From Sphyrna mokarran (Eukaryota): 64,000 nt of DNA. The stretch is taken from contig JAGIQG010000009.1 of assembly GCA_024679065.1 (NCBI GenBank), positions 90,272,001 through 90,336,000 of the forward strand, written 5' to 3'. Position numbers and translations under genes: made by a program. The notes beneath the pieces are model-generated. The model was not told the origin of the DNA and ran no database searches. It was given only the letters and a program-made list of their open reading frames with translations. This document shows, piece by piece, positions 3,891-63,898 of this stretch (its first letter is position 1; each line of letters opens with the position of its first letter).

Positions 3891-5137
3891 ATAGAACATA
3901 GAAAATTACAGCGCAGAACAGGCCCTTCGGCCTTCGATATTGCGCCGACCAATTAGGAAAAAACAATGACCCTCTAACCTAAACCATTCCCTTTCCGTCC
4001 ATAAACTTATCTACTAACCTCTTAAACGCCACCAAACTTGGCGCATCTACAACTGCCGCAGGCAGGGCATTCCATACCCTTACCAACCTCTGGGTAAAGA
4101 ACCTACCTCTGATATCCGTCCTATAACTACCACCCCTTAATTTAAAGCTATGTCCCCTCATGCTAGCTTTCTCCATCCTAGGAAAAAGGCTATCACTGTC
4201 CACCCTATCTAAACCTCTACTCATCTTATATGTTTCAATAAGGTCTCCTCTTAGCCGCCTTCTTTCTAACGAAAACAATCTCAAATCCCTCAGCCTCTCT
4301 TCATAAGACCTGCCCTCCATACCAGGCAACATCCTGGTAAACCTCCTCTTGTACCCTCTCCAATGCCTCCACATCTTTCTTATAATGCGGGGACCAGAAC
4401 TGCACACAATACTCCAAGTGCGGCCGCACTAGAGTTTTGTACAGTTGCAACATGATGCTGCGGCTCCTAAATTCAATTCCCCTACCAATAAAAGCTAAGA
4501 CTCCATATGCCTTCTTAACAACTTTATCCACTTGACTGCCTACTTTCAGGGATCTATTGACACATACACCAAGATCCTTCTGTTCCTCAACACTATTAAG
4601 AGCCCTACCATTAGCCCTATACTCTAAACATTTATTGTTCGTGCCAAAGTGCATTACCTCACACTTTTTCACATTAAACTCCATTTGCCACCTCTCGGCC
4701 CAGCTCTGCAACTTGTCCAAGTCACTCTGTAAACTATAACACCCCTCTTCACTATCTACCACTCCACCGACTTTAGTGTCATCTGCAAATTTACTGATCC
4801 ATCCCTCAATACCCTCATCCAGATCATTTTTAAAAATTACAAACAGCAGGGGCCCCAAAACAGACCCCTGAGGCACACCACTCGTCACCGAACTCCACGA
4901 TGAATATCTCCCATCAACCACCACCCTCTGTCTTCTATCTGCTAGCCAATTCCTAATCCAATTAGCTAAATCACCCTCAATCCCATACATCTGCATTTTC
5001 TGCAGAAACCTTCCATGGGGCATCTTATCGAATGCCTTACTAAAGTCCATATATACCACATCAACTGCCTTACCCCCATCCACCTCTTTGGTCACTTTTT
5101 CAAAAAACTCAATAAGGTTAGTAAGGCACGACCTACC
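3891..5137 (-). mobile_element. CR1 LINE, 5'-truncated (subfamily A)
   Basis: RT ORFs 4301..5095 ([14 protein letters not shown]) and 3979..4407 with one frameshift; tail at 3891. Confidence 0.95.
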
Positions 5138-5139
5138 GA

Positions 5140-8100
5140 CTCAGGAACTGCTAGGCAACAAATCCTCCATTTGCACATCGATCAGAGCGAAGAACCTCAT
5201 TAGACACAACCATACCCTTAATATCGCAAACCGCTCTCACTATCTCCCAGGCAGATACTCCAGGAAGCATGGAAAATGTACAGGTCTGCAGGTGAGAGTG
5301 AAAATCCTCCCCAGCTTATTGCTTGCAAATGCACAGTTTCTGGAAAACAAGCTGGATGAACTCAGAGCCAGACTCATTTCCAAAAAGAACTGAGGGACCG
5401 CCGTGTACTCTGTTTCAGAGACATGGCTCACTCCTTCTTCACCGGACAATGCCCTACAATCAGAGTGCTTCTCAATCCATTGAATTGACTGTACAGTGGC
5501 CTCAGGCCAGTCTAGGGGAGGTGGGGTCTTCTTCCTAATCAACAGCTTATGGTGCCTAGACTTAACAACAGTGGCAACTTTCTACTCCCCAGACTTAGAA
5601 TATTTGATGCTAAAATGCCACCCTTGCTACCTTCTGCGAGAGTTCACTTCTGATATCCTGATGGCAGTTTACATCCCACCCCATTGGGATCACACTGCAC
5701 GATACGTGCACCACTATCAATACCCTTGAGAGAAACATCCTGAAGTCTTGTTCATCGTGGCCGGGGACTTCATTCAGGCCAAGCTCAAGAGTGTACTACC
5801 AAGTTACCACCAACATGTCTCCTCTGTTCCAAACATCCTAAACCACTGATACACGAATATCAAACATGCCTACTGGTTTATTGCCCACTCACACTTTGGC
5901 AAATCAGACCACAAGGCTGTGCTCTTACTCCGGCTTACAAGCAAAAACTGAAGTGGAAGAATTTATCAAAGAGAGTCATGCAATGTTGGTCTGAGGAATC
6001 CGATGATCTCCTACGGGATTGCTTGGAGTCAGCTGACTGGTCAGTATTTTAAAAACTCTGTGACCAGTCTGAATGAGTACACCACTACAGTAACTGACTT
6101 CATTAGTAAGTGTGTGAAAAACTGTGTGCCAAAGAAGCAAATCCGTGTGTTCCCCAACTGGAAACCATGGATGAACAGGAATATCCACTGCTTGCTGAAA
6201 TCCAAGTCTGAGACGTTCAGGTCAGACAACACTGACCTATACAAGAAAATCATTTATGATCTAAAGAGATCCATCAAAGATGTCAAAAGACAATCCCGGA
6301 CTAAGCTAGAGTTCCAGGCTAGCCACACAAACACCTGCTGACTGGCAAGGTCTGCCAAGACATAACAGGCTACAAGATGAAGGCATGTAAAATCACTGGC
6401 TCCAACGTGCCCCTCCTTGATGAACTCAATGCATTCTATGCCTGTTTTGAGCAAGAGGTCAGCGAGGGCACGCCCTCCACCCTCAGTGAACCAATATCTT
6501 GAGTCACCATTGCAGATGTCAGAGCAGCTTTCTCGAAGGTCAACCCACAGAAAACAAATGGCCCAGATGGGGTACCCGGATGTACATTCAGATCCTGCAC
6601 AGACCAGCTGAAGGGGGTATTCACAGACATCTTCAACTTCTCTTTACAATAATCTGAGGTCCCTATCTGCTTCAACAAGACAACCATCATGCCTATACCC
6701 AAGAAAAACTAGCAGTGGCACAGTAGTATAGTGGGCGGCACAGTAGTACAGGGGTTAGTACTGCTGCTTCACAGATCCAGGGACCTGGGTTCGATTCCTA
6801 GCTTGGGTCACTGTCTGTGTGGAGTTTACACATTCTCCTCGTGTCTGCATGGGTTTCCTCCGGGTGCTCCGGTTTCCTCCATGGTTCAAAGATGTGCGGG
6901 TTAGATCGATTGGCCACGCTAAAATTGCCTTTAGTGTCCTGAGATGCATAGGTTAGAGGGATTAGCGGGTAAATATGTAAGGATAAGGCGGGTAGGGCCT
7001 GGGTGGGATTATGGTTGGTGCATACTCGATGGGACAAATGGCCTCTTTCTGCACTGTATGGTTTCTATGATTAATGACTACTGGCTGGTGGCTCTGACAT
7101 CCATCATTATGAAATGCTTTGAAAGATTAGTCATGGCACAAATCAATTCCAGCCTCCTGGACTATGTGAATCCACTACAATTTGCCTACCATCCACAGCA
7201 GACGCCATTTACCTGGTCCTGCACACAACCTTGGAACACCTAGATAACAAAGCCACCTACGTCAGACTCCTATTTATTGACTACAGCTCAGCTTCAACAC
7301 TATTATTCCCATGAAACTTATCTCTAAATTCCATGGCTTGGGCCTCAACATCTCCCTCTGTGAATGGATCCTGAATTTCCTAACTCACAAACCACAATCA
7401 GTAACGATAGGCAACAACACTTCCTCCACAATCATCCTCAACACCCCACAAGGCCGTGTTCTCAGCCCCCTACTGTTCACCTTATTCATCTATGACACTG
7501 TGGCCAAATTCTCCTCCAATTCGCCTTCCAAGCTGATAACACCATCATAAGTGGATCTCAAACAATGACGAGACAGAGTACAGGAATGAAATGGAGAATC
7601 TGGTGAATTGGTGCAGCAACAATAATCTCTTCCTTAATGTCGACAAAAAAGAAATTGTCGTCGACTTCAGGAAGCGTAAAGGAGAACATGCCCATGTCTG
7701 CACCAATGGGGATGAAGTAGAAAGGGTTGAGAGCTTCAAGTTTTTAGGTGTCCAGATCACCAATAACTTGTCGTGGCCCCCCGCCCTCACCCCTGCTGCC
7801 AGCATTATAGTTAAGAAAGTCCACCAATGCCTATACTTTCTCAGAAGACTCAGGAAATTTGATATATCAGCCACGATTCTCACCAACCTTTATAGACGCA
7901 CCATAGAAAGCATTCTTTCTGGTTGTACCACAGCTTGGTATGAGTCCTGCTCTGACCAAAACCACAAAAAACTACCAAAGGTCATGAACGTAGACCAATC
8001 TATCACGCAAACCAGCCTCCCATCTATTGACTCTGTCTACATTTCCTGCTACCTTAGCAGAGCAGCCAGCATAATTAAGGTCATCCACACCCTGAACATT

Positions 8101-9810: not shown

Positions 9811-10145
9811 CATAGAAGAAAGATAGAATCTCTACAGTACAGATGAGGCCATTCAGCCCATCAAATCTACACCGACTCTCTGACAGAGTATGTTACCCAG
9901 GCCATCTCCTCTGCATTGTAACCTGACACATTTACAATGCATAATCCAGCTTACCTACATACCTTTGGACATCGAGGGGCAATTTAGCATGGCCAATCCA
10001 CCTAACTTGCACATCTTTGGATTGTGGGAGAAAATTGAAGCACCTGGAAGAAAGAGCGTGCCAACTGTAAAGACAGTTACCTGAGGCTGGAACTGAATGT
10101 AGATCACTGGAGCTGTGAGGCAGCAGTGCTAACCACTGTGCCAGC
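9811..10145 (-). mobile_element. HE1/V-SINE
   Basis: GGCACAGTGGTTAGCACTGCTGCCTCACAG head on the minus strand, degenerate core and tail. Confidence 0.8.
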
Positions 10146-10260
10146 CCAAAGGTTGGCTGGCTAACAGGAAGCAGACAGTAGGCGTAAACAGGTCTTTCTC
10201 AGGTTGGCAGGATATAGTGGTGACTAACCACAAGGATTAGTGCTGGGACCTTAACTGTCT

Positions 10261-11344
10261 GGTTGTGAAGAAAGCATATAGTATGCTAGTCTTTATAGGA
10301 AGGGGTATAGAGTACAACAGCTGGCCTTTAATGTTGCAGTTGTATAAAACGTTGGTTAGGCCTCATTTGGAATATTGCATCCAGTTCTGGTCACCTTACT
10401 ACCGGAAGGACGTGGAGACTCTGGAGAGAGTGCAGAGGAGGTTTACCAGGATGCTGCCTGGTATGGAAGGTCTGAGTTACGAGGAGAGATTAGGCAAATC
10501 AGGACTGTTTTCCTCAGAAAGACGTAGACTTAGAAGAGATCTGATAGAGGTGTACAAGATTATGAGGGGTATAGATAGAGTAAACAGGGTTAAGCTTTTT
10601 CCTAGGATGGACATAAATACCATGTGGGGTCAAGGCTTAGGGTGAGTGGGTAAGGTATAATTTAGATCTAGAGGTAGTTTTTTCCAGAGGGTGGTGGCGG
10701 TATGGAACGTGCTGCCAAGTGGTGGAGGCAGGCACTCTGGAGTTATTTAAGAGATACTTAGATGGGCACATGAACAGAATGGGAATGGAGGGATATAGAA
10801 AACTGGTTTAAAATAGGGATCATGAGCCTTGGAGTTCCCTGGGAAGTGTGTAAATTGTCAATAATATTTATGTATTTGTTTTATCCTACAGGTACTTTGG
10901 TCCGCCTTGTTGTCTAACAAGGGGCATACACGCAAGGGGTCGTAAGAGGGCTGCTCTTGGATTGTTTTTTGAGAGTATCCTAGTGCTTCATGTCATTAGT
11001 GTACGCTTGACCTGGACTATTTGATGGGCAACACGACAGCTCAGTGACTATCGCTGTGCTGTGCAGATACATGGATTTGGGCCTGTGTCTGTGGGAGTTT
11101 GCGCATTCTCCCTGTGCTTGTGTGGGTTTTCTCCAGGTGCTCCGGTTTCCTCCCACATCCCAAAAATGTGCTCTTAGGCTGACTGGCAGAACAAATTCTC
11201 CCTAAATTGTGTCAAATTTGGTTTCAATGCATAGATCTATAAACATAGACAGGGATCATGGGTAGAAGTGGGAACATCGAGGTGGTGGCATGAGCTCATT
11301 GGGCCGAAGGGCCTGTTTCCCGTGCTGTTTTGTTCTTTGTTCTT
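10261..11344 (+). mobile_element. CR1 subfamily B 3' fragment with extended 3' UTR (hairpin + captured SINE), inserted into an older CR1
   Basis: ORF2 C-terminus (10265..10645), ~530-nt 3' UTR, (TTCTTTG)n tail. TGTCT duplicated at 10256-10260 and 11345-11349; the host CR1 RT resumes across the insertion. Confidence 0.88.
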
Positions 11345-11976
11345 TGTCTACAATTTATATAATGACTTGGATGAAGGGACTGAAAGATTGGTTGCTAGGC
11401 TTGCTTATGTGACAAAGTAGGAAAGTTGTAAAGAGGACAAGAGGGGGCTACAAATAGACTTAGATAGGTTAATTGTATGGGCAAAGTACCATGTTGGAAA
11501 ATGTGGAATTGTCAATTTTGGCAGGAGAATAAAAAAGCAAACTATTTAAATGATGAAAGGTTGCCAAACCCTGAGTTGTAGAGGGATCTGGATGTCCTCA
11601 TGCATGAATCACAGAAGGCTCATACAGAGGTACAGCAAGTAGTTAGGAAAGCTAATAGAATGTTATGATGATACTGTGCCTTTAAGAAATGTATTTGAGC
11701 CATGTTCTTGTGTGGGATCTGTCGTAAACGGATAACTACCTATTTTTAAACAATGAGTATGGGTGTGCGTGCGTGCATGTGACTAAGTTAATTGAACTGA
11801 AAACAGTCAGAAAGTGCAAGTCATCAAAAGGTTTGGTATTAAACAGGCATTTTGAAATGAAGATTAGCAAAGCTAAGATGGAGATAGAACATAGAACATA
11901 GAACATTACAGCACAGAACAGGCCCTTCGGCCTTCGATGTTGCGCCGACCAAAATAAAAAGCAATGCCCCTCCAAA

Positions 11977-14741
11977 CTAAGCCATTCCCTTCTCTTCCAT
12001 ATTCTTATCAACTAACCTCTTAAACGCCACCAAACTTGGCGCATCTACAACTGCTGCAGGCAGGGCATTCCACTCCTGAACCACCCTTTGGGTAAAGAAC
12101 CTACCTCTGATATCCGTCCTATAACTATCACCCCTTAATTTAAAGCTGTGTCCCCTCGTGCTAGCTTTCTCCATCCTAGGAAAAAGGCTATCACTGTCCA
12201 CCCTATCTAAACCTCTAATCATCTTATATGTTTCAATAAGGTCTCCTCTTAGCCGCCTCCTTTCTAACGAAAACAACCTCAAATCCCTCAGCCTCTCTTC
12301 ATAAGACCTGCCCTCCATACCAGGCAACATCCTGGTAAACCTCCTCTGTACCCTCTCCAATGCCTCCACATCTTTCTTATAATGCGGGGACCAGAACTGC
12401 ACACAATACTCCAAGTGCGGCCGCACTAGAGTTTTGTACAGTTGCAACATGACGTTGCGGCTCCGAAATTCAATCCCCCTACCAATAAAAGCTAAGACTC
12501 CATATGCCTTCTTAACAACCTTCTCGACTTGACTGCCTACTTTCAGGGATCTATGCACATACACACCAAGATCCCTCTGTTCATCAAGACTACTAAGAAT
12601 CCTACCATTAGCCCTATACTCTACACATTTATTATTCCTGCCATAGTGCATTACCTCACACTTTTCCACATTAAACTCCATTTGCCACCTCTCGGCCCAG
12701 CTCTGCAACTTGTCCAAGTCTCTCTGCAAACTATAACACCCCTCTTCACTATCTACCACTCCACCGACTTTAGTGTCATCTGCAAATTTACTGATCCATC
12801 CTTCAATAACCTCATCCAGATCATTTATAAAAATTACAAACAGCAGGGGCCCCAAAACAGACCCCTGAGGTACACCACATGTCACCGAACTCCACGATGA
12901 ATATCTCCCATCAACCACCACCCTCTGTCTTCTATCTGCTAGCCAATTCCTAACCCAATTAGCTAAATCACCCTCTATCCCATACATCTGCATTTTCTGC
13001 AGAAGTCTTCCATGGGCCACCTTATCAAACGCCTTACTAAAGTCCATATATACCACATCAACCGCCTTACCCCCATCCACCTCTTTGGTCACTTTTTCAA
13101 AAAACTCAATGAGGTTAGTAAGGCACGACCTACCCTTCACAAAACCATGCTGACTATCCCCAATCAATTCATTTCTCTCTAAATAACTATAAATCCTATC
13201 CCTAATAATTCTCTCCAATACTTTGCCCACAACAGAAGTAAGACTCACTGGCCTATAATTCCCTGGAAGGTCTCTCTTCCCCTTCTTGAACAATGGGACC
13301 ACATTCGCTATCCTCCAGTCCTCCGGAACCACACCCGTAACCAACGACGACCTGAAGATCAGAGCCAGAGGCTCTGCAATCTCCTCTCTTGCCTCCCAGA
13401 GAATCCTAGGGTAAATCCCGTCCGGCCCAGGGGACTTATCCAACTTCAAACCCTCGAGAATATCTAGCACATCCTCCCTATCTACTTCGATACCTTCCAG
13501 TTTGCTACCCTGTACCTCAGTGTTCTCCATAACTACATTTGCATCACCCTGCATGAATACCGAAGAGAAATATTTATTCAGTGCCTCTCCAATCTCTTCA
13601 GGCTCCACGCACAACTTCCCCACTGCTGTCTATGACTGGCCCTAACCTTGCCCTAACCAATCTTCTATTCTTAACATATCTAAAGAAAGCTTTAGGATTC
13701 TCCTTAATCCTATCAGCCAAAGTCTTCTCGTGTCCCCTCTTAGCTCTCCTCAATTCACTCTTTAGCTCCCTCCTGGCTAATCTATAGCTATCCATTGCAC
13801 TAACTGAGCCTTCAAGCCTCATCCTGACATAAGCCTCCTTTTTCCTTTTACCAGCAAATCAACTTTTTCGTACACCAAGGTTCTCTTACTCGACCATTTC
13901 CTCCTTGCCTGACAGGGACATACTTATCAAGGACTCGCAGCAGCTGCTCCTTGAATAAGCTCCACATTCCAGATGTTCCCAGTCCCTGTAGTTTCCTAGT
14001 CCAATCTATCACCCTAATTCCCTCCTTATGGCCTCATAATTACCCTTCCCCCAGCTATAACTACTGCCCCCAGCTTCATGCCTATCCCTATCCATCACTA
14101 AGGTGAACGTAACCGAATTGTGGTCACTATCACCAAAATGTTCACTAACTTCCAAGCCTAACACCTGGTCTGGCTCATTGCCAGCACCAAATCCAATGTA
14201 GCCTCACCTCTAGTTGGCCTATCTACATACTGAGTCAAAAAACCTTCCTGCACACTTTGTACGAAAACTGACCCCTCTAACGAGCTAGAGCTATAGCTAT
14301 TCCAATCAATATTAGTAAAGTTAAAGTCCCCCATAACAATTACCCTATTACTTTCACTCCTGTCCAGGATTGACTTTGCAATCCTTTCCTCTACCTCTCT
14401 AGAACTTTAGGAGGTCTATAAAAGACTCCCAACAGGGTGACCTCTCCTCTCCTGTTTCTAATCTCAGCCCCTACTACCTCAACAGACAAGTCCTCATCAA
14501 ACTTCCTTTCTGTCACTGTGATACAGTCTTTGACTAATAATGCCACTCCTCCCCCCCTTCTACCTCCTTCTCTACTCCGACTAAAGCATTTGAACCCTGG
14601 AACCTGCAACATCCATTCTTGTCCCTGCTCTACCCAAGTCTCTGAAATGGCCACAACATCGAAGTTCCAGGTACTGGTCCAAGCTGCAAGTTCCTCCCCT
14701 TTATTGCGAATACTCCTTGCATTAAAGTATATGCATTTCAA
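11977..14741 (-). pseudogene. CR1 ORF2 (APE endonuclease + RT), frameshifted
   Basis: YFNARS/ISETW/GGGVAL (14391..14741), SDH motif, and the 548-aa RT ORF 11977..13623 with FADD. Confidence 0.92.
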
Positions 14742-25264: not shown

Positions 25265-25555
25265 AAAGAATCTTACAGTGCAGAAGGAATCCATTTGGCC
25301 CATCGAGCCTGAACAAATAGCAATCCCACCTAAGCCATATCCCCGTAACCTCTGCTAATCCTCTGACACTAAGGTCAATTTGGCATGGTCAATCAAACTA
25401 ACTCGCACATCTTTGGAATGGGGAGGAAACCAGAGCGTCCAGAGAAAACCCACACAGGCACAGGAAGAACCTGCAAACTTCACACAGTCACTTGAGGCTG
25501 GAATTGAACTGGGGTCCCTGGCACTGTGAGGCAGCAGTGCTAACCACTGAGGTGC
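25265..25555 (-). mobile_element. HE1/V-SINE
   Basis: CAGTGGTTAGCACTGCTGCC A-box, GTTCAATTCC B-box, core and tail. Confidence 0.82.
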
Positions 25556-25889
25556 TCTAATACTCATTTTTATTCTGTTGTGCTATATACATTTTTTACA
25601 GAACACAAGGAAAGTTCATTGCTAAAGATTACACAATGAACCACTTATTCTCATTCTCTGTAGATCAAGGTTTGATTTAATTATAAATGTTGAGATTTTT
25701 ATTGGCTTTTAAATGTTAACCCAATCCAATGCTGCTAACTACACTCACTCAACAACATATATTACATAGGAATCTGTCCACTTTTGAAGTGAAAAAACAT
25801 CAAAGCCTTCCAAGAATGAGACATAAAGTTTAATTGTTATATCGCATCATATTATAAACCAGCTCCCGGATAATCAACTCCATACTAAC

Positions 25890-28917: not shown

Positions 28918-31485
28918 GGAGAGGAGAGGTCACCCTGTTGGGAGTCTTTTACAGACCTCCTAATAGTTCTAGAGAGGTTGAGGAAAGGATTGCAAAGTCC
29001 ATTCTGATTAGGAGTGAAAGTAGTAGGGTAATTGTGATGGGGGACTTTAACTTTGCTAATATTGATTGGAATAGCTATAGCTCTAGCTCGTTAGAGGGGT
29101 CAGTTTTCGTACAGAGTGTGCAGGAAGGTGTTTTGACTCAGTATGTAGAGAGGCCAACTAGAGGTGAGGCTACATTGGATTTGGTGCTGGGCAATGAGCC
29201 AGGCCAGGTGTTAGGCTTGGAAGTTAGTGAACATTTTGGTGATAGTGACCACAATTCGGTTACGTTCACCTTAGTGATGGATAGGGATAGGCATGAAGCT
29301 GGGGGCATTAGTTATAGCTGGGGGAAGGGTAATTATGAGGCCATCAGGAGAGAATTAGGGTGCATAGATTGGACTAGGGAACTAGAGGGACTGGTAACAT
29401 CTGGAATGTGGTGCTTATTCAAGGCGCAGCTGCTGCGAGTCCTTGATAAGTATGTCCCTGTCAGGCAGGGAGGAAATGGTCGAGTAAGAGAGCCTTGGTG
29501 TACGAAAAAAGTTGTTTTGCTGGTTAAGAAGAAAAAGGAGGCTTATGTCAGGATGAGGCTTGAAGGCTCAGATAGTGCAATGGATAGCTATAGATTAGCC
29601 AGGAGGAGGTAAAAAGTGAATTGAGGAGAGCTAAGAGGGGACACGAGAAGATGTTGGCTGATAGGATTAAGGAGAATCCTAAAGCTTTCTTTCGATATGT
29701 TAAGAATAGAAGATTGGTTAGGGCAAGATTTGGGCCAGTCATAGATAGCAGTGGGAAGTTGTGCGTGGAGCCTGAAGAGATTGGCGAGGCACTGAATAAA
29801 TATTTCTCTTCGGTATTCACGCAGAGTGCTGGAAATGTAGCTGTGGAGAGCACTGAGGTACAGGGTTGCAAATTGGGGAGTATTGTATTAGATAGGGAGG
29901 ATGTGTTAGAAATTCTCGAGGGTTTGAAGTTGGATAAGTCCCCTGGGCCGGACGAGATTTACCCTAGGATTCTCTGGGAGGCAAGAGAGGAGATTGCAGA
30001 GCCTCTGGCTCGGATCTTCAGGTCCTCGTTGGTTTCGGGTGTGGTTCCGGAGGACTGGAGGATGGCGAATGTGGTCCCATTGTTTAAGAAGGGGAAGAGA
30101 GACCTTCCTGGGAATTATAGGCCAGTGATTCTTACTTCTGTTGTGGGCAAGGTATTGGAGAGAATTATTAGGGATAGGATTTATAGTTATTTAGAGAGAA
30201 ATGAATTGATTGGGGATAGTCAGCATGGTTTCGTGAAGGGTAGGTCATGCCTTACTAACCTCATTGAGTTTTTTGAGAAAGTGACCAGAGAGGTGGATGG
30301 GGGTAAGGCGGTTGATGTAGTAAATATGGACTTTAGTAAGGCGTTTGATAAGGTGGCCCATGGAAGACTTCTACAGAAAATGCAGATGTGTGGAATAGAG
30401 GGTGATTTAGCTAATTGGATTTGGAATTGGCTGGCAGATAGAAGACAGAGGGTGGTGGTTGATGGGAGATATTCATCGTGGAGTTCGGTGACGAGTGGTG
30501 TGCCTCAGGGGTCTGTTTTGGGGCCCCTGCTGTTTGTAATTTTTATAAATGATCTGGATGAGGGTATTGAGGGATGGATCCGTAAATTTGCAGATGACAC
30601 TAAAGTCGGTGGAGTGGTAGATAGTGAAGAGGGGTGTTATAGTTTGCAGAGAGACTTGGACAAGTTGCAGAGCTGGGCCGAGAGGTGGCAAATGAGTTTA
30701 ATGTGGAAAAGTGTGAGGTAATGCACTTTGGCAGGAACAATAAATGTGTAGAGTATAGGGCTAATGGTAGGGCTCTTAATAGTGTTGAGGAACAGAAGGA
30801 TCTTGGTGTATGTGTCAATAGATCCCTGAAAGTAGGCAGTCAAGTGGATAAAGTTGTTAGAAGGCATATGGAGTCTTAGCTTTTATTGGTAGGGGAATTG
30901 AATTTAGGAGCCGCAGCATCATGTTGCAACTGTACAAAACTCTAGTGCGGCCGCACGTGGAGTATTGTGTGCAGTTCTGGTCCCCACATTATAAGAAAGA
31001 TGTGGAGGCATTGGAGAGGGTACAGAGGAGGTTTACCAGGATGTTGCCTGGTATGGAGGGCAGGTCCTCTGAAGAGAGGTTGAAGGATTTGAGGTTGTTT
31101 TCGTTAGAAAGGAGGCGGCTAAGAGGGGATCTTATTGAAGCATATATGATGATTAGAGGTTTAGATAGGGTGGACAGTGATAGCCTTTTTCCTAGGATGG
31201 AGAAAGCTAGCACGAGGTGACACAGCTTTAAATTAAGGGGTAGGAGTTATAGGACGGATATCAGAGGTAGGTTCTTTACTCAAAGAGTGATTAGGGAGTG
31301 GAATGCCCTGCCTGCAGCTGTTGTAGATGCGCCAAGTTTGGTGGCGTTTAAGAGGTTAATTGATAAGTATATGGAAGAGAAGGGAATGGTTTAATTTGGC
31401 GGGGCATTGCTTTTTATTTTGGTCGGCACAACATCGAAGGCCGAAGGGCCTGTTCTGTGCTGTATTGTTCTATGTTCTATGTTCT
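28918..31485 (+). mobile_element. CR1 LINE (subfamily A), truncated in the endonuclease
   Basis: ORFs 28938..29612, 29621..30721, 30685..30879 and 30921..31220; tail (TTCTATG)n. Confidence 0.95.
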
Positions 31486-37176: not shown

Positions 37177-38645
37177 AAAGAACAAAGAACACAACAGCAC
37201 GGAAAACAGGCCCTTCGGCCCAAGGAGCCTGCGCCGCCACCCCAATGTTCCCACCTCTACCCGTGGATCCCTGTCCATGTTTATAGATCTATGGATTAAA
37301 AACCAAATTTGAGACAATTTAGGGAGAATTTGTTTTGCCAATTAGCTTAAGAGCACATCTTTGGGATGTGGGAGGAAACCGGAGCACCCGGAGAAAACCC
37401 ACGCAAGCACGGGGAGAATGCGCAAACTCTCACAGACACAGGCCCAAATCCATGTATCTGCACAGCACAGTGATAGTCACTGAGCTGTTGTGTTGCCCAT
37501 CAAATGGTCCAAGTCAAGCGTACACTAATGACGTGAAGCACTAGGATACTGTCCAAAAAAAATCCAAGAGCAGCTCTCTCACGACCCATTGCATCTATGC
37601 CCCTCATTAGACAACAAGGTGGACCAAAGCACCTACAGGATAAAAACAAGTACATCAATATCATCTATTTACACACTTCCCAGGGACTCCCAAGGCTCAT
37701 GATCCCTATATTAAATCAGTTTTCTATACCCCTCCATTCCTATTCTGTTCATGTGCCCATCTAAGTATTTCTTCAATAACTCCAGAGTACCTGCCTCCAC
37801 CACTTTACTTGGCAGCGCATTCCATACCCCCACCACCCTCTGTGTGAAAAATCTCCCTCTAGCATCCAAATTATACCTTACCCCTCTCACCCTAAGCCCG
37901 TGACCCCTCGTGCTATTTGAGTCCATCCTAGGAAAAAGCTTAACCCTGTTTACTCTATCTATACCCCTCATAATCTTGTACACATCTATTAGATCTCCTC
38001 TAAGTCTACGTCTTTCTAAGGAAAACAGTCCCAATTTGCCTAACCTCTGCTCGTGACTCAGACCTTCCATACCAGGCAGCATCCTGGTAAACCTCCTCTA
38101 CAGGCTCTCCAGAGTCTCCACGTCCTTCTGGTAGTAAGGCGACCAGAACTGGACGCAGTATTCTAAATGAGGTCTAACCAACGTTTTATACAACTGCAAC
38201 ATTAAAGGCCAGCTCTTGTACTCTATACCTCTTCCTATGAAGGCTAACATACTATATGCTTTCTTCACAACTTTTTCCACTTGCTCTGCCACCTTCAGAA
38301 ACTTGTTCACCTGCACCCCCAGGTCCCTCTGCATTTCTATACTCTTAATAGGTCTACCTTTTATCATATACCTCCCCACTACATTTTTTCTCCCAAAATG
38401 CATCACCTCACATTTATCAGGATTGAATTCCATCTGCCGTCTGTCTGCCCAAGCTACCAGCCTATCTATGTCCTGCTGCATCGCCTGACAATGCTCCTCA
38501 CTATCCGCAAGTCCAGCCATCTTTGTATCGTCTGCAAACTTGTTGATCACTCCACTTACTCCTTCTTCCAAGTCATTTATATATATTACAAATAGAAGAG
38601 GTCCCAGTACCGAGCCCTGCAGCACACCACTAGTGACCGACCTCC
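37177..38645 (-). mobile_element. CR1 subfamily B with extended 3' UTR (hairpin + captured SINE)
   Basis: RT ORFs 38098..38685 and 37711..38082; the 3' UTR is collinear with 10810-11344. Confidence 0.9.
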
Positions 38646-39739: not shown

Positions 39740-42622
39740 GAACAATATGAACTGGAGCAGCAGCAGGCCACTCAGCCCCTCGAGCCTGCTCCACCATTCA
39801 ATATGATCATGACACTGTAATCTCAACCCCACATTTCTATCAACCCCTGATAATCTCTCACCCTCTTGTTAATCAAGAAACTATCTAGCTCTGCTTTAGA
39901 AGTTTCTGCTTCCACTGTCTTTTGATGAAGAGTGTCAGACACTCAGGGCTCTCAGAGAAAGAAAATCCTCCTTTCTGTTTTAAATGAGTGCCCCCTTATT
40001 TTTAAACAGTAGTTCCTTGTTCTAAATCCTTTGACAAGAAGCACCATCCTCTCCAAATCCACTCTGTCAATACCTCTCAGGACTTAAGGACTTTGATCAA
40101 GTCATCTAAACTCTTCTAAACTCCAGCCTAGCCTTTTGAACCTTTCCTCCTAAGTTAACCCTTCCATTCCTGCTCATTGATTTGTAAATCTTCTCTGAAC
40201 TGTTTCCAACATATTTTATAACTTTCTTTAAATAAGGAGAGTCAGAGGGCATAGGTGAATGTAATGGCCATCACTAAGGAGAAAGTTCTGGGGAAACTGA
40301 AAGGTCAGAAAGTGGATAAATCAACTGGACCGGACAACATCCCAGTGTTCTAAAAGAGATAGCTAGGAAATTGTGAAGGCATTGGTGGTGATCTTTCAGG
40401 GATCACTGAAGGCAGGGAGGGTCCCAGAGGACTGGAAAGTAGCTAATGTAACACCACTGTTTAAGAAGGGAGGGAGGCAGCAAATGGGAAGTTATAGGCC
40501 GGTTAGCCTGACTTCAGTCATTGGTAAGATTTTAGAGTCCGTTATTGAAGATGAGATTGCTGAGTACTCGAAATGATAAAATAGGACTGAGTCAGCACGG
40601 CTTCTTCAAGGGGAGGTCATGTCTGTCAAATCTGTTAGAGTTCTTTGAGGAGGTGACAAGGAAGTTAGATAAAGGAGAACCAGTGGATCTGATTTATTTA
40701 GAATTCCAGAAGGCCTTTGACAAGGTGCCGCATAGGAGACTTAATTAAGTTAAGAGCCCATGGTGTTCAGGGTAAGATCCTGGATGGATAGAGGATTGGC
40801 TGACTGGCAGAAGGCAAAAAGCGGGAATTAAGGGGTCCCTTTCAGAATGGCAGCCGGTGACTAGTGGTGTGCCTCAGTGATGGTGCTGGGACCACAACTT
40901 TTCACAATATATGTTAATGATTTGGAAGGAGGAACTTAGCTTGTCACTAACTTTGCAGATGATACAAAGATACATAGAGGGGCAGGTTGTATTGAGGAGG
41001 TAGGGGGGCTGCAGAGGGACTTGGACAGGAGTGTGGGCAAAGAAGTGGCAGGAGGAATACAATGTGGAGACCTGTGAGGTTTGGAAGGAGGAATGGAGTC
41101 ATAGACTATTTTCTAATTGGGAAAATGCTTAGGAAATTGGAAACACAAAGGGACTTAAGAGTCCTTGTTCAAGATTCTCTTAAGATTAATGTGCAGATTT
41201 AGTCAGCAGTTAGGAAGGTAAATGCAATGTCAGCATTCATGTTGAGAGAGCTAGATAGTAGAGCACAGATGTACTTCTGAGAATGTGTAAGACTCTGGTC
41301 AGACCCCATGTGGAGTATTGTGGGCAGTTTTGGGCTCTGTATCTAAAGGAGGATGTGCTGGTCTTGGAAAGTGTCCACAAGAGGTTCACAAGAATGATCT
41401 CTGGAACGGTTGAGGACACTGGTTCTGGTCTCACTGGAGTTTAGAATGATGATAATGGAAAATTAAATGAATTAAAAGAAGATAATTGATGAGGATGCAG
41501 TTTATATGATTTAGTAAGACATTTTACAGATCCCACATGACAGACTGTACAAAACTAAAATCCCATGGAGTTAAGGCGTGCTGGCTAGATGGATACAGAA
41601 ACTTGATTACAGAAGACAGAGTTATGGTGAAAGGATGTTTTTTCATGATGGAGATCCAATGGCGTTCCGCAGGGATCACTGATGGTATCTCTGTTGTTTG
41701 TAAAATATATAAGTGATCTGGAGGGAAATGTGGGTGATATGAATAGTAAATTTGCAGATGACACGAAGATTCGTGGAATTGCTGATTGTGCCAGGGATTG
41801 TCAGAAGATACAACAGAGTATAGATAAATTGGAGGATTGGGCACAGAAATGGCATATGGAGTTTAATCTGGAAAATGCAAGGTAATGCATTTGAGGATCA
41901 AATTTAGGTATGAACTAAACCATAAATTAGAATCCTTAGGAACATAAACATACAGAGAGCATACTGGGCATGCAGGTCCATAGTTGCTTAAAAGTGGTAA
42001 CATAGATGGCCAAAGTGATTAAGAAGGCATAGGTCATGCTTACCTTCATTGACTGGGCCATTGAGTACAAGAGTTGGGAAAACATGTTGCAACTACATAA
42101 AACCTTGGTTAGACTGCATTTGGAGCATTGTGTGCAGTTCTAGTCACCAAATACCAAAAGGAAGTGGAAACTTTGGAGGGACTGTAAAGGAGATTTACCA
42201 GGCCTCAAGGATGTTGACTATGAGGAGAGCTTGCATAAACTAGAATTGCTTTACAGGAAAAGCTAAGGCTGAGGGGAGATCTAATAGAAGCTTATAAATT
42301 TATGAGTGGCAAACACAGATGGATAAATCAAAGACTTTTTCTCAGGAGGCGCATAGGCTCAACATGAAAGGGAGAAAGTTTAAGGGAGATGCGTGGGGAA
42401 AGAGTGGCAGGTGCCTGGAAAGCACTGCTAGAGGAGATAACAGAAGCAGACACGTTAGCAACATTTAAGAGGCATCTGGATGGGTACAGGAATAGGGAGA
42501 GAATAGAGGAATATGGTCTGACCAAGAGCGTAAGGTTTTTTTTCAATTTAGTTGGGACATCATGATTGGTATGTGTTTGGAGGCCAAAGGGCATGTTCCT
42601 GTGCTGTACTTTTCTTTGTTCT
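39740..42622. mobile_element. Mosaic of older CR1 fragments (one minus, two plus)
   Basis: VPEDWKVANVTPLFKKG, QHGF..GRSCL and KFADDTK peptides, plus CR1 tails. Confidence 0.7.
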
Positions 42623-47099: not shown

Positions 47100-50000
47100 A
47101 TGAAGATCCTCATTATATTTTTCGGACTTTGTGGACTATTTGGACTTAATGGACGTACGATAGTAAAAAAACAAGTTACCCAAAGACTGCATGCTTATAC
47201 TTATTTATATATCTCATGTATGCTGAAAAATTGAATATAAGCAAGTTTGGGTTTGTATCCACATCCCCGTCCATTCAAAAGGAGGAATATCTCTCCAATC
47301 CCTCCCATGGTGGAGTGGATTTTACGTCAAAATCAAACAGGAATTGGGGGAGATATGATAAAATGGAAATCAGCCAACTACGAAATGACTAGGTTTTCAG
47401 CTTGGTACCAACCTGCTTATAATCATGCCTTGCTTCCACTTTCTTTTATTATCCCCTCAAATGACGTGTGAAATTCCCTATGTTATAGTAAATCAGGGAA
47501 ACGAAAGTTGATGGGGCAAAGTAGATGCAACCTTACAGCTGAGGGGGAAGGACGGGGAGGAATTTGTACAGTGTGTTTTAGAAGGGTCCTTGGAGCAGTA
47601 TGTGGATGGCCCGACTAGAGTGGGGGCTATACTGGATCTGGTTCTGGGGAATGAGCCAGGGCAGGTGGTTGACATTGTAGTAGGAGAGCATGTGTCAAAT
47701 AGTGACCACTCTGTCTGCTTTAGGATATTAATGGAAAAAGATTAAGCCTGCCTTAAGGGGAGGGTGTTAAACTGGGGGAGGGCTAGATACAGCCAAATTA
47801 GGCAGGATCTTAAGGATACCGACTGGGATAAGCTGTTCGAGGGTAGGTCGACGCTGCACATGTGTGAGTCTTTCAAGGAAAAACTAAAATCTTTGCAGGA
47901 AAGACAAGTGCCGGTAAGGAGGAAGGATGGGAAAGGTAGGATTAGAGAACCGTGGGTTACTAGGGATATTGAGGACTTGATCAGGAAGAAGCGGGAGGCG
48001 TATTTTAGATCTAGGCAACTGTGGACAGAGACAGTGCTGGAAGAATATAGAGAGTGTAGACGGGATCTTAAAAGGGGTGTCAGAAAGGCAAAAAGGGGCC
48101 ATGAAATGGCTTTGGCAGATAGGATTAAGGAAAATCCTAAGGCATTTTACTCCTACGTAAGGAGCAAAAGGATGGTTAGAGGGAAGATTGGACCTCTCAG
48201 GGACAGAGGAGGGGAACTATGCTTAGAGCCTGAGGGAATGGGGGAGATCCTGAATGAATACTTTGCGTCGGTATTCACGCGGGAGAGGGGCCTGATGTCT
48301 GGTGCCGGCTTTGAGGAATTTGAGGACCCGTTAAAGGAAATAATCATTACGAGGGAAGAGGTGTTGGGGCTTTTAGGCAGCATAAAGACTTATAAAGCTC
48401 CGGGGCCTGATGGCATTTACCCCAGGCTGCTAAGGGAGGTGAGAGATGACCTTGCTGGGCCTCTGACGCAAATCTTTGTCTCTTCTTTGGACACAGGTGA
48501 GGTCCCAGAGGACTGGAGGATAGCAAATGTAGTACCGTTGTTTAAAAAGGGTCAGAGGGATAACCCAGGGAATTATAGGCCGGTGAGCTTGACTTCAGTT
48601 ATAGGTAAGCTAATGGAGAGGATCCTCAGGGATAGGATGTATGAGCATCTGGAGCGCTGCAATCTGATCAGGGATACGCAGCATGGCTTCGTTAAGGGGA
48701 GGTCGTGCCTTACGACCCTAGTGGAATTTTTTGAAGAGGTGACAAAAACGGTTGATGAAGGACAAGCCGTTGATGTCGTCTACATGGATTTCAGTAAGGC
48801 GTTTGACAAGGTTCCTCATGGTAGGCTGATAGAAAAGTTGAAGGTGCATGGGATACAGGGCCAGGTATGTAGATGGGTTGAGAACTGGCTTGGGAGGAGG
48901 AGACAGCGGGTAGCAGTGGAAGGCTCTTTTTCCAACTGGAGGTCTGTCACTAGTGGTGTGCCACAGGGCTCAGTACTAGGACCTCTTCTATTTGTGGTTT
49001 ATATAAATGACTTGGAAGAGGGGTAGGTGGTGTGATCAGCAAATTTGCTGATGACGCTAAGATGCTTGGAGTGGCGGGAACTGAGGAGCAGTGCCAGGAA
49101 ATACAACAGGACATAGATAGGCTGGTAGAATGGGCAGATAGATGGCAAATGGAATTTAATCCGGATAAATGCAAGGTGATGCATTTTGGCTGGAAAAATG
49201 TAGCGGGGAGTTATAGGATAAAAGGTAAAACTATCCGGAGTATAGAGACGCAGAGAGACCTGGGGGTGCAGGTTCACAAGTCTCTGAAGGTGTCAGTACA
49301 GGTGGAAAAGGTGATAAAGAAAGCTTATGGTATGTTAGCCTTCATAGGAAGGGGTATAGAATACAAGAGTAGGAGTTTGATGTTGCAAGTGTATAGAACG
49401 TTGGTTAGGCCTCACTTGGAGTACTGCGTCCAGTTCTGGTCGCTGTACTACCGGAAGGATGTGGAGTCCCTGGAGAGAGTGCAGAGGAGATTTACCAGGA
49501 TGTTGCCTGGTATGGAAGGGCTGTCCTATGAGGAAAGATTGAACACACTGGGGTTGTTTTCCCTTGAAAGACGTCGGCTGAGAGGGGATCTAATAGAGGT
49601 ATATAAGATTATGAGGGGTATAGACAGAGTAAATGGTGGTAAGCTTTTTCCACCATTAGAAATGAATAGAACAAGGGGATAGAATAGAAATAGAATAGAA
49701 ATAGAATGAAGGTCACGGCCTTAGGGTGAGGGGGGCTATGTACAAGACGAATATTAGAGGGCAGTTTTTCACACAAAGGGTAGTGGGGGTGTGGAATGCA
49801 CTACCGAGTAAGGTGGTGGGAGCAGGCACGCTACGGTTGTTTAAGGGTCTCTTAGACAGCCACATGAGCGGTCTGCAGATAGAGGGATATAGCAGGACTG
49901 TCTAAATATCTTATTTGTTTCCACAGGTTATTCGGTCCATGCATTCGGCAGGTCGTGCGAGGGCCGCTCTTGGATGTTGCTTCAGGAGTGGCCTAGTACT

Positions 50001-50872
50001 TCACGTCGTTAGTGTATGCTTAAACTGGACCATCTGATGGGCAACATGACAGCTCAGAGACTATCGCTGTTGCTGTGCAGACACATGGATTTGGGCCTGT
50101 GCCTGTGGGAGTTTGCGCATTCTCCCCGTGGTTGCGTGGGTTTTCTCTGGGTGCTCCGGTTTCCTCCCACATCCCAAAAATGTGCTCTTAGGCTGATTGG
50201 GCAACAAATTTTCCCTATATTGGTCCCTATACGTCATTAAGACGTTAGGACGGCGGCGCGGGCTCATTGGGCCGAAGGGCCTGTTTCCCGTGCTGTGTTG
50301 CTCTTTGTTCTTTGTTCTTGTTCTTTGACCAGTAGCAAACCTATCTACCAAAGAGTACGGAATATAACCTCTAATAGCTCATGGGCACATAACATCCCCA
50401 ACACCCTGGATGACATTGGCTGATGATTTTACAGTCTATAATGGGAAATCTGGCAAACGTAACAGCAGCAGAAGCCAGGACAATTGGCCAGGCACTGGCC
50501 GAGGTCTAGGCTGACGTGGTGGCTGTCGGGACTGTCGCATTACAAAATCGACTGGCTTTGGATTATCTGTTAGCCTCGCAGGGAGGAACGTGTGCTATTG
50601 TAGGTCAGAAGTGCTGCACTTATATCCCAGATAACTCTGAAAATATCACCAACCTGGCTGGCTACATGAAGAGGCAGGCTAATCAGCTTCAGGAGGTTGG
50701 CCGGGAGTTTCATGATTATAACCCACCGGGTTGGTTAGGATGGTTAAGTCACAGATTATTCGACTGAATCTTTAAGGCTTTTATTTTGCTACTATTACTG
50801 TTACTTGGGATAGGATTTCTTGTTTGCTTGTGTAGATGTATTATTAATCAAGTCATGGATATACCTATTTAG
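47100..50872 (+). pseudogene. env: ERV env remnant (gamma-type), split by a CR1 insertion
   Basis: ATG at 47100 with signal-like MKILIIFFGLCGLFG and a degenerate (C)WVC motif at ~47245. After the CR1: heptad region, ISD LQNRLALDYLL, CX6CC (CAIVGQKCC) and hydrophobic anchor IFKAFILLLLLLLGIGFLVC, ending at TAG 50872. Several stops. Confidence 0.9.
47543..50325 (+). mobile_element. CR1 subfamily B' inserted in ERV env, carrying the extended 3' UTR cassette
   Basis: ORFs 47764..49026 and 49032..49682; an (AATAG)n insertion at ~49679-49708; cassette at 49905-50205; (TTCTTTG)n tail. Confidence 0.92.
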
Positions 50873-55084: not shown

Positions 55085-55200
55085 ATGGGTGGCACAGTGG
55101 TTAGCACTACAGCCTCACAGTGCCAGGGACCTGGGTTCAGTTCCCAGCATGGATCACTGCATGTATGGAGTTTGCATGTTCTCCCTCTGTTTGCATGGGT
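55085..55200 (+). mobile_element. 5' part of a HE1/V-SINE
   Basis: GGCACAGTGGTTAGCACT A-box, GGTTCAGTTCC B-box and start of the core; truncated by the fold-back element. Confidence 0.75.
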
Positions 55201-55202
55201 TT

Positions 55203-59217: not shown

Positions 59218-60056
59218 TTTGCAGAGAGACTTGGACAAGTTGCAGAGCTGGGCCGAGAGGTGGCAAATGGAGTTTAATGTGGAAAAGTGTGAGGTAATGC
59301 ACTTTGGCAGGAATAATAAATGTGTAGAGTATATGGCTAATGGTAGGATTCTTAATAGTGTTGATGAACAGAGGGATCTTGGTGTATTTGTGCATAGATC
59401 CCTGAAAGTAGGCAGTCAAGTCGATAAGGTTGTTAAGAAGGCATATGGAGTCTTAGCTTTTATTGGTAGGGGGATTGAATTTCGGAGCCGCAACGTCATG
59501 TTTCAACTGTACAAAACTCTAGTGCGGCCGCACTTGGAGTATTGTGTGCAGTTCTGGTCCCCGCATTATAAGAAAGATGTGGAGGCATTGAGAGGGTACA
59601 GAGGAGGTTTACCAGGATGTTGCCTGGTATGGAGGGCAGGTCTTATGAAGAGAGGCTGAGGGATTTGAGGTTGTTTTCGTTAGAAAGAATGCGGCTAAGA
59701 GGAGACCTTATTGAAACATATAAGATGATTAGAGGTTTAGATAGGGTGGACAGTGATAGCCTTTTTCCTAGGATGGAGAAAGCTAGCACGAGGGGACGTA
59801 GCTTTAAATTAAGGGGTGGTAGTTATAGGACAGATATCAGAGGTAGGTTCTTTACCCAGAGGGTGGTTAGGGAGTGGAATGCCCTGCCTGCGACAGTTGT
59901 AGATGTGCCAAGTTTGGTGGTGTTTAAGAGGTTAGTTGATAAGTTTATGGAGGAGAAGGGAATGGTTTAGTTTGGAGGGTCATTGCTTTTTTCATAATTG
60001 GTCGGCACAACATCGAAGGCCGAAGGGCCTGTTTTGCGCTGTAATGTTCTATGTTC
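59218..60056 (+). mobile_element. CR1 3' fragment (subfamily A)
   Basis: ORFs 59219..59659 and 59617..59970; tail. Confidence 0.93.
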
Positions 60057-62169: not shown

Positions 62170-62273
62170 TGAAATACAAGTCTGTTCGCAATTTCTCTGC
62201 ATGAACTTTTGAGTTTGTTTTATTTGAGAGATAATTGCATTGGGACGAAGATTTTTGGAGATGATGAGGTATC

Positions 62274-63552
62274 AAAGAACAAAGAACAAAAAATAAACAA
62301 AATTATAGCTTTGGCCCTCCAAGCCTGCACCAACCACGCTGCCTCACTTAACTAAAGCCCTCTACTCTTCTGGGGACCATATCCCCCTATGCCCATGATA
62401 TTCTTACGCTTGTTAAGACGTATCTTAAAAGTCACTACCGTATCCCTTCTGCTACATCCCTTGGCAACGAGTTTCAGGCTTCCACTACTCTCCGTGTAGA
62501 AAATTTGCCTCATAATCTTCTTTAAACCTTGCCCCTTGCACCTTAAACCTGTGCCCTCTAGTAATTGACTCTACGATCCTGGGAAAAAGCTTCAGACTAT
62601 CCATTCTGTCCATGTCTCTCATAATCTTGTAGATTTCTATCAGGTTACTCTTCAATCTCCGTTGCTCCAGTGAGAACAAATCAAGTTTCCCCAACCTCTC
62701 CTCATAGCTAATGTATGCCATACCAGGCAACATTTTGGTAAATCTTTTCTGTACCCTCTCCAAAGCCTCCACATCCTTCTGGTAGTGTGGCAATCAGAGT
62801 TGAATGCTATATTCCAATTGCGGCCTAAATAAAGTCCTATAAGGCTGCAACGTAACATGCAAATTTTTAAACTCAGTACACTGGCCAATAAAGCAAGCAT
62901 GCCATATGCATTCTTGACTATCTTCTCCATCTGCATTGCCTTCCAGTAACCTGTATACCTGTACACCCAGATCCCATTGCCTAACAATACTTTTAAGGGT
63001 CCTGCCATTTACTGTATATTTCCTATCTGTATTCAACCTTCCAAAATGCATTCCCTCACATTTGTCCAGATTAATCTTCATCTGCCATCTCTCTGCCCAA
63101 GTCTCCAACTGGTCTATATCCTGCTGTATCCTCTGATGGTCCTCATCACTACCTCCAAATCCAACAACCTTTGTGTCATCTGCAAACTTACTAATCAATC
63201 CATTTACATTTTCCTCCAAATTATTTATGTATATTACAAACAGCAAAGGTCTCAGCACTGATCCTTGAGAACTACATTCTCAAGGAGAACTACAGCCCTC
63301 CATTCACAAATGTACCCTTCCACTGCTACCCTCTGTCTTCTTTGACCGAGCCAGTTTTGTAAACTCCTTGCCAGCTCACCTCTGATCCCATGTGACTTTG
63401 TCTTCTGCACCAGACTGCCATGAGTGACCTTGTCAAAGGCCTTATTGAAGTCCATGTAGGCAACATTCACTGTGCTACCCTCATTAATCATCTTCGTCAC
63501 TTCCTCAAAAAACTCGATCAAGTTCTGTGAGACACAATCTCCCTTCACAAAG
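62274..63552 (-). mobile_element. CR1 3' portion just upstream of the MHC promoter
   Basis: ORFs 63252..63548, 62794..63258 and 62485..62793; tail at 62274. Confidence 0.88.
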
Positions 63553-63611: not shown

Positions 63612-63898
63612 AATCATAGAATCCCACAATGCAGAAGGAGGCCCATCAAGTCTGCAATGACAACAATCTCATCCTATTCCTATAACCCACGTATTTACCC
63701 TGCAATCCCTCTGACACCAGGGGCAATTTAGCATGGCTAACCAACTTAACCTGCACATCTTTGGACTGTGCAAGGAAACTGGAATACCCAGAGAAACCTA
63801 TGCAGACATGGGGAGGACGTGCAAACTCCACATAGACAGTCCCCTGAGGCCAGAACCAAACCCAGGAAATGCTAACCACTGTGCCACCATGCTGCCCC
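63612..63898 (-). mobile_element. HE1/V-SINE
   Basis: GGGGCAGCATGGTGGCACAGTGGTTAGC head, V core and CR1-type tail. Confidence 0.82.

Follow-up and report, generated by a model that had tools for sequence, protein, structure and literature searches.

The DNA analyzed here is a 64,000-nucleotide stretch of the Sphyrna mokarran genome (assembly GCA_024679065.1, contig JAGIQG010000009.1, positions 90,272,001 to 90,336,000, forward strand), referred to below as the window. Within these 64 kb lie three 5'-truncated copies of a CR1-type long interspersed nuclear element (LINE), and direct reading shows that their 3' untranslated regions (UTRs) share one order. The stop codon of open reading frame 2 (ORF2) is followed by a module of ~200 nt, a 60-nt segment resembling the head of a short interspersed nuclear element (SINE), a V-SINE core with a further ~40 nt from the SINE body, and then a short spacer and the CR1 3' UTR. 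The inserted part is called the cassette below. An earlier note, made from the sequence alone, had described three copies with a common order of ORF2 end, module, head, V-SINE core, and LINE tail, and direct reading confirms this.

Three LINE copies with a composite 3' UTR

Copy 1 was delimited by direct reading at 10261-11344 on the forward strand. Its ORF2 3' part (10261-10811, stop codon at 10809-10811) is homologous to 10 other ORF2 ends in the window, and its frame was checked against copy 3. A first AGGGATCATG lies 3 nt past the stop codon (10815-10824), and the module follows (10825-11025), with a predicted long hairpin and a splice-acceptor-like run. The SINE-head-like segment (11026-11085) begins at the SINE's own 5' end; its A-box region is altered and its B box deleted. 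Next come the V-SINE core with the post-core body (11086-11215) and a spacer (11216-11250) that is barely alignable with that of copy 3. The remainder, 11251-11344, opens with a second AGGGATCATG (11251-11260) and comprises the canonical CR1 3' UTR, a short GC hairpin, and TTGTTC-like terminal repeats. The copy 1 tail matches 10 other places in the window by self-BLAST, and alignment shows that the tail of the cassette copies is collinear with that of free SINEs.

Copy 2 (37178-38645, reverse strand) follows the same order, with its stop codon at 37713-37711, AGGGATCATG on the left at 37707-37698, the head-like segment at 37498-37439, and a changed form of the repeat on the right at 37272-37262. 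Copy 3 (~47543-50325, forward strand, the 5' limit being that of the earlier note) belongs to a diverged subfamily and has neither repeat. Its reverse transcriptase (RT) pieces at 47764-49026 and 49032-49682 carry a Pfam RVT_1 match, and they are followed by the stop codon (49903-49905), a module shortened at its 5' side (49906-50038), the head-like segment (50039-50099), and then the core and tail. A short run of ATAGA-like tandem units at 49675-49715 breaks into its ORF2, and the frame is lost there. At 533 nt (copy 1) and 420 nt (copy 3), the 3' UTR is longer than the ~100 nt seen in CR1 copies lacking the cassette.

Flanks, strands, and 5' truncation points differ among the three copies, indicating three separate insertions. 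The junctions and the B-box deletion, in turn, are identical in all three. These identities and the grouping of the copies on an ORF2 tree (below) support, within the window, the earlier proposal of one capture followed by spread with the LINE.

The carrier lineage and the linkage of the cassette to ORF2

A 420-amino-acid piece of copy 3 matches RVT_1 with an E value of 9.7e-26 (Pfam). The best named RT relatives are elasmobranch proteins (Scyliorhinus, Mobula, and Pristis; 55-69% identical), and the next are proteins from birds, turtles, and lizards, with 39-60% identity, or 42-47% where the whole query is covered. Many of the homologues have endonuclease domains of the APE type, combining PF03372 and PF14529 with PF00078; the three window copies are 5'-truncated. 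By direct reading, both the carriers and the cassette-less CR1 copies end in a short hairpin plus short tandem repeats, with no poly(A). A 3' end of this kind, with a short hairpin, short tandem repeats, and no poly(A), characterizes the CR1 clade. As both the RT relatives and the hairpin-plus-repeat 3' end fit, the LINE likely belongs to this clade, which according to PMC4824008 is the dominant LINE of birds. Several public gene models named as host proteins also match the LINE RT over most of the RT's length, namely an elasmobranch inositol phosphatase, ribosomal protein S24, and ubiquitin-conjugating enzyme, as does a crane 'enolase superfamily member'; such models probably contain LINE sequence.

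To judge from the window, the cassette travels with ORF2. Self-BLAST finds the module three times, always within these copies, and a profile of module plus head recovers the same three at E ≤ 9e-60, with the next best match in the 64 kb at E 0.49. The SINE part is found by self-BLAST in the three copies and in five free V-SINE cores, a softer search adding a sixth free SINE, while homology to the ORF2 end is present at 11 places. In three of three occurrences within the window, module and head stand behind, and joined to, an upstream ORF2, and they do not occur there as a short free-standing noncoding unit. The note had also stated that its subfamily A CR1s lack the cassette, and this agrees with the seven other CR1 3' ends that were compared, all seven of which are without it (two further tail-only BLAST matches were left out of the comparison). 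As several daughters in two subfamilies have the same junctions, the copies do not conform to a single-locus chimera or a 3' transduction.

Mapping of cassette presence on an ORF2 tree, as proposed earlier, was carried out with 10 copies and a midpoint root. The three carriers cluster together (support 90/93), their group being nested within lineages that lack the cassette, and a single change is needed. Their sister is a pair of cassette-less copies at 42013-42622 (forward strand) and 62270-62918 (reverse strand), assigned by the tree and by reading; the latter has the same TTGTTC-like tail repeats. The outgroup consists of five young cassette-less copies. Sister and outgroup lineages both have short 3' UTRs, and the tree fits a single gain of the cassette by the LINE. 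Four copies of a cassette-less subfamily, at 3975-4522 (reverse strand), 11975-12520 (reverse strand), 59428-59975 (forward strand), and 30850-31400 (forward strand), have end branches of 0.01-0.03, and this subfamily looks to have been active very recently.

Word matching finds pieces of copy 1 in 20 of the 23 sequencing runs listed, the rows spanning 13 studies. The highest share of copy 1 words is 0.69, in one run of the organism designated A, which may be the source sample; organisms B and C reach 0.51 and 0.45, and a possible RNA run of A reaches 0.41. Runs labeled with other organisms contain up to half of the element's words.

SINE identity of the cassette and its rate of change

Six free HE1-type V-SINEs lie in the window. 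The one nearest to the cassette head is at 6733-7072 (forward strand), and the other five are at 1795-2092, 9815-10147, 25265-25560, and 63612-63866 on the reverse strand and at 55086-55202 on the forward strand. The cassette is 74-76% identical to free V-SINEs over 113-135 nt, starting just before the core, and therefore contains a V domain. One free-SINE match continues to the tail, with 65.6% identity over 273 nt; together with the alignment, this long match shows a 3' tail common to the free SINEs and the CR1 copies. Just before the free SINE at 6733, which has the head most like that of the cassette, part of this SINE's head occurs a second time (6700-6760).

The head of the cassette is less easily recognized. 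The head of the free SINE at 6733-7072 scores 22.2 bits against the Rfam tRNA model (E 0.0071), below the gathering score of 29, while for the cassette head Rfam gives no tRNA match at E ≤ 10, either with the segment alone or with 10700-11400. In an ungapped test over all offsets, the copy 3 head reaches a summed score of 61.0 against six free SINE heads (null, 33.1 ± 5.3; 0 of 1000 shuffles), 35 of its 61 letters match the best SINE, and the offsets are in collinear register. Semi-global alignment (+1/-1) is strong against one SINE only (1, 0, and 7 of 2000 shuffles), the remaining five SINEs giving weak results; an upstream control segment gave 97, 520, and 1072 of 2000 shuffles. Our claim of homology for the head is based on the ungapped test, and we consider a SINE origin of this segment to be supported with moderate confidence. 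Homology to the free SINE head, real though faint, is significant for copy 3 and weaker for copies 1 and 2. The segment also matches its own reverse complement weakly, at 11036-11062 and 37462-37488 (E 0.49-1.8), which may reflect a small palindrome or chance.

Alignment bears out the statement that the same eroded A box and lost B box are found in all three copies: the B-box region is deleted and the A-box region altered in the same way, and working A and B boxes are absent. Judged from the letters, the RNA polymerase III promoter of the cassette is lost. The description of the SINE as decayed therefore holds for this promoter and fails for the head-like segment and core, which are among the best conserved parts of the element.

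Pairwise comparison of the three copies gives a strongly uneven profile. The ORF2 3' parts of copies 1 and 2 are 92.3% identical (506/548), whereas copy 3 shares 76.5% (420/549) with copy 1 and 76.9% (430/559) with copy 2; copy 3 thus keeps the cassette behind a clearly diverged ORF2, as had been noticed before. Between copies 1 and 3, 111 codons give a nonsynonymous-to-synonymous rate ratio (dN/dS) of 0.12, with a proportion of synonymous differences (pS) of 0.49 and a synonymous distance (dS) of 0.80, indicating that both subfamilies were long under protein-level selection after their split. For the noncoding parts, the segment counts comprise the first 41 nt of the core and 42 nt after the core, the rest of the core being left out. 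The module is 71.8% identical between copies 1 and 3 (94/131), 69.7% between copies 2 and 3 (92/132), and 88.0% between copies 1 and 2 (139/158). In the same order of pairs, identities are 57/60, 55/60, and 58/60 for the head-like segment; 37/41, 38/41, and 38/41 for the first 41 nt of the core; 31/41, 30/41, and 37/42 for the post-core stretch; 14/33, 20/33, and 66/78 for the linker, which has 45-47 gap columns against copy 3; and 49/51, 46/51, and 48/51 for the last 51 nt, the tail. By BLAST, the whole SINE part is 93.7% and 91.4% identical between copies.

Head and core together differ at 7 of 101 sites between copies 1 and 3, compared with 35 of 71 synonymous sites (Fisher P = 2.8e-10). 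The tail (P = 1.8e-8) and, to a lesser degree, the module (P = 0.0035) are also distinct from synonymous sites, whereas the linker shows no difference from them (P = 0.53). Two sharply conserved islands, head plus core and tail, thus stand within a UTR that otherwise evolves fast. For LINEs of this type, the tail is known to be the recognition site. For head and core, the contrast with synonymous sites is most simply read as constraint on the SINE-derived part, and the earlier guess of selection is strongly supported by it.

Probable acquisition of the cassette and its relation to known systems

Taken together, the data make it probable that a CR1 lineage acquired a SINE-bearing 3' UTR insert once, spread it, and kept its head and core under constraint. 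A master copy of this CR1-clade lineage would have acquired, on a single occasion, an insert of ~430 nt just past the ORF2 stop codon, made up of the ~200-nt module and then an HE1-type V-SINE from its own 5' end, without the B box, with the canonical CR1 tail behind it. As reverse transcription would begin at the tail and pass through the insert, daughters would inherit it, 5'-truncated ones included. The lineage would then have split into at least two subfamilies, both under protein-level selection, in which synonymous sites diverged far more than the head-like segment and V core, these two having changed about as little as the tail. We infer that the V-domain region acts in cis on the LINE RNA, possibly through folding, ribonucleoprotein assembly, or binding of the LINE's own or a host protein. 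A single uptake of the SINE by the LINE is suggested by the head remnant, the common B-box deletion, and the wide distribution of V-SINEs.

Several observations weigh against this reading. The evidence consists of three copies in one 64-kb window; a full-length copy is absent among them, and autonomy of the lineage is judged from dN/dS alone. The constraint is measured across one subfamily split, where patchwise exchange between subfamilies could mimic it, and part of the core lies outside the segment counts. In the ungapped head test, 138 and 48 of 1000 shuffles reach the observed scores of copies 1 and 2, whose heads have a 1-nt deletion that breaks the register. Stringent local alignment of the head (+2/-3, 12 pairs vs shuffles) gives a best z-score of 2.8, and a head-only profile of six SINE heads matches none of the three cassette heads. 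Finally, the repeat flanking the insert is absent in copy 3, and a SINE-type tail is absent before the right repeat.

The last two points bear on the mode of capture. The earlier note had read AGGGATCATG as a fossil target-site duplication. The repeat does occur on both sides of the insert in copy 1, but it is missing from copy 3, and a direct repeat of at least 10 nt with its left copy within the first 20 nt arises in 53 of 5000 shuffles (~1%), so that this reading is only suggestive. Both copies of AGGGATCATG resemble the start of the canonical UTR in a cassette-less sister copy (42550-42570). Since copy 3 lacks the flanking repeat and no SINE-type tail precedes the right repeat, plain SINE retroposition does not fit; the 200-nt module, moreover, separates the left repeat from the 5' end of the SINE, and we rejected simple insertion of a SINE into the UTR. 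We infer instead template switching during reverse transcription, from a SINE RNA to a second RNA and then to the LINE UTR. A target-site duplication, TGTCT, had been proposed for copy 1 as a whole. The letters are present on both sides (10256-10260 and 11345-11349), but the duplication is weak because the tail repeats may simply end with the right copy as their final unit.

Patchwise exchange also underlies a different explanation, in which module and V core form a portable 3' UTR unit that moves by template switching between CR1 subfamilies, possibly also R2, and head and core are so alike owing to recent exchange in place of long-term constraint in one lineage. The mosaic identity profile could be produced in this way too. 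However, with the neighboring module at 70-72% and the post-core stretch and linker at 42-76%, a short double switch bracketing exactly head and core would be needed, and the ORF2 tree places all carriers together. R2 sequence is absent from the 64-kb window. We regard such exchange as unlikely. A broader proposal joins both ideas: the V domain would be a cis-acting RNA element read by the retrotransposition machinery or a host factor, kept by LINEs under strong selection, and the module and V unit would pass between CR1 subfamilies, R2, and SINEs as a portable 3' UTR cassette. If true, this would explain why conserved SINE domains persist for hundreds of millions of years; at present we hold it to be a doubtful, though conceivable, extension.

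Transfer in the opposite direction would make the long LINE 3' UTR ancestral, the free V-SINE having taken body and tail from the LINE by the classical route of SINE birth. In favor of such a transfer, the free SINE and the LINE 3' region are collinear from just before the core to the tail, and PMC5786205 treats the origin of SINE bodies as unsolved. Yet the carriers are nested among cassette-less CR1 lineages, albeit with a midpoint root only, and the similarity continues into the tRNA-related head of the SINE, which the LINE would not have had first. In addition, the reported range of V-SINEs extends from lamprey as far as cnidarians and bivalves (PMC4824008), which makes them far older than this CR1 subclade. 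We therefore consider this direction very improbable. That nothing propagates at all, the three copies being due to SINEs that inserted independently in nested fashion, to segmental duplication, or to faulty assembly, has in its favor the density of SINEs, six free copies in 64 kb, but is already contradicted by the same junctions, B-box deletion, and upstream 200-nt module in all three copies, by their different flanks, strands, and 5' truncation points, and by an ORF2 divergence of 8-24%, and can practically be dismissed.

Single acquisition by a CR1 lineage, the reading that we prefer, can be set beside several known LINE-SINE relations. The V-SINE HE1 and its partner LINE HER1 were reportedly described by Ogiwara et al. 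in 1999 and 2002. The pair is listed for sharks and rays in a table of PMC3747384. Host group and kind of SINE are the same here, and the free SINEs of the window share their 3' tail with CR1 copies; whereas the known relation concerns the tail only, the LINE UTR described here also has a SINE-head-like segment and the V core. MER6/MER6A, according to PMC6887750, is a Mariner-derived miniature inverted-repeat transposable element with the body and tail of a headless V-SINE. As in our case, a V domain travels inside a different mobile element, no longer has promoter function of its own, and multiplies together with that element. However, MER6 is a nonautonomous DNA transposon without a SINE head, whereas the carrier here is a protein-coding LINE of the very clade that mobilizes V-SINEs. 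Here, too, part of the head remains, unlike in MER6, and the segment changes at a lower rate than synonymous sites.

A preprint (bioRxiv 10.1101/2025.02.02.635956) reports chimeric LINE insertions of a one-off kind, among them Alu/L1, U6/L1, and tRNA/L1. Their likeness to the present case would lie in the joining of a small RNA or SINE to a LINE when reverse transcription switches template, but they are single, dead-on-arrival loci with the partner on the 5' side, in contrast to a master lineage with several daughters in two subfamilies whose SINE lies on the 3' side of the ORF. LINE-derived SINE bodies, too, involve sequence common to LINE and SINE beyond the tail, but there the direction is from LINE to SINE, and as far as the partial text of PMC5786205 goes, only the 5' parts of RTE and Vingi elements are involved. 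In that text, no sequence similar to the conserved SINE bodies was found, and two papers, PMC5786205 being one, state in the passages available that such a domain is not known in LINEs. No such LINE is described in the accessible portions of a CR1-group survey (PMC13343379), a shark SINE paper (PMC5499810), an R2 survey (PMC12247875), and the L1 chimera preprint. More generally, paper searches found no LINE with a V domain, although the family may be present in the consensus libraries that accompany PMC13343379 and shark genome papers. On the basis of these paper searches, which do not extend to Repbase or Dfam, the chimera is provisionally regarded as undescribed.

What is new here is the apparent constraint on a SINE-derived piece within a LINE 3' UTR. 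The conservation of some SINE bodies (V, CORE, and Deu) across phyla calls for an explanation, and one old idea is that these bodies aid the SINE in working with its LINE. In the present case, a LINE lineage itself has a V domain, kept far better than its own synonymous sites, which hints that the conserved piece helps the element copy itself. If true genome-wide, this would be a natural experiment and a direct target for a CR1 retrotransposition assay, and it would add transfer from SINE to LINE as a third route of LINE-SINE exchange, the other two being the sharing of tails and the derivation of SINE bodies from LINEs.

The ~200-nt module has no relatives in the window beyond the three copies (self-BLAST and profile) and no match in Rfam. 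A small-RNA origin of the module or head (5S-like or tRNA), suspected from a resemblance, was rejected, as neither Rfam nor ARAGORN gave a supporting match: at E ≤ 10, Rfam over 10700-11400 returned only a chance snoRNA match outside the element, and over the whole window there were no Rfam hits at the gathering threshold and none from ARAGORN. A consensus fold of the three modules has 49 pairs, 3 of them changed on both sides, with a positive covariation term. The hairpin z-score is -2.93 for copy 3 (0 of 200 shuffles), -1.08 for copy 1, and +1.32 for copy 2; as only copy 3 beats its shuffles and three sequences are too few, we do not regard this structure as proven. In all copies, the front part of the module has a pyrimidine run ending in CAG that resembles a 3' splice site (10868-10895, 37620-37665, and 49906-49930).
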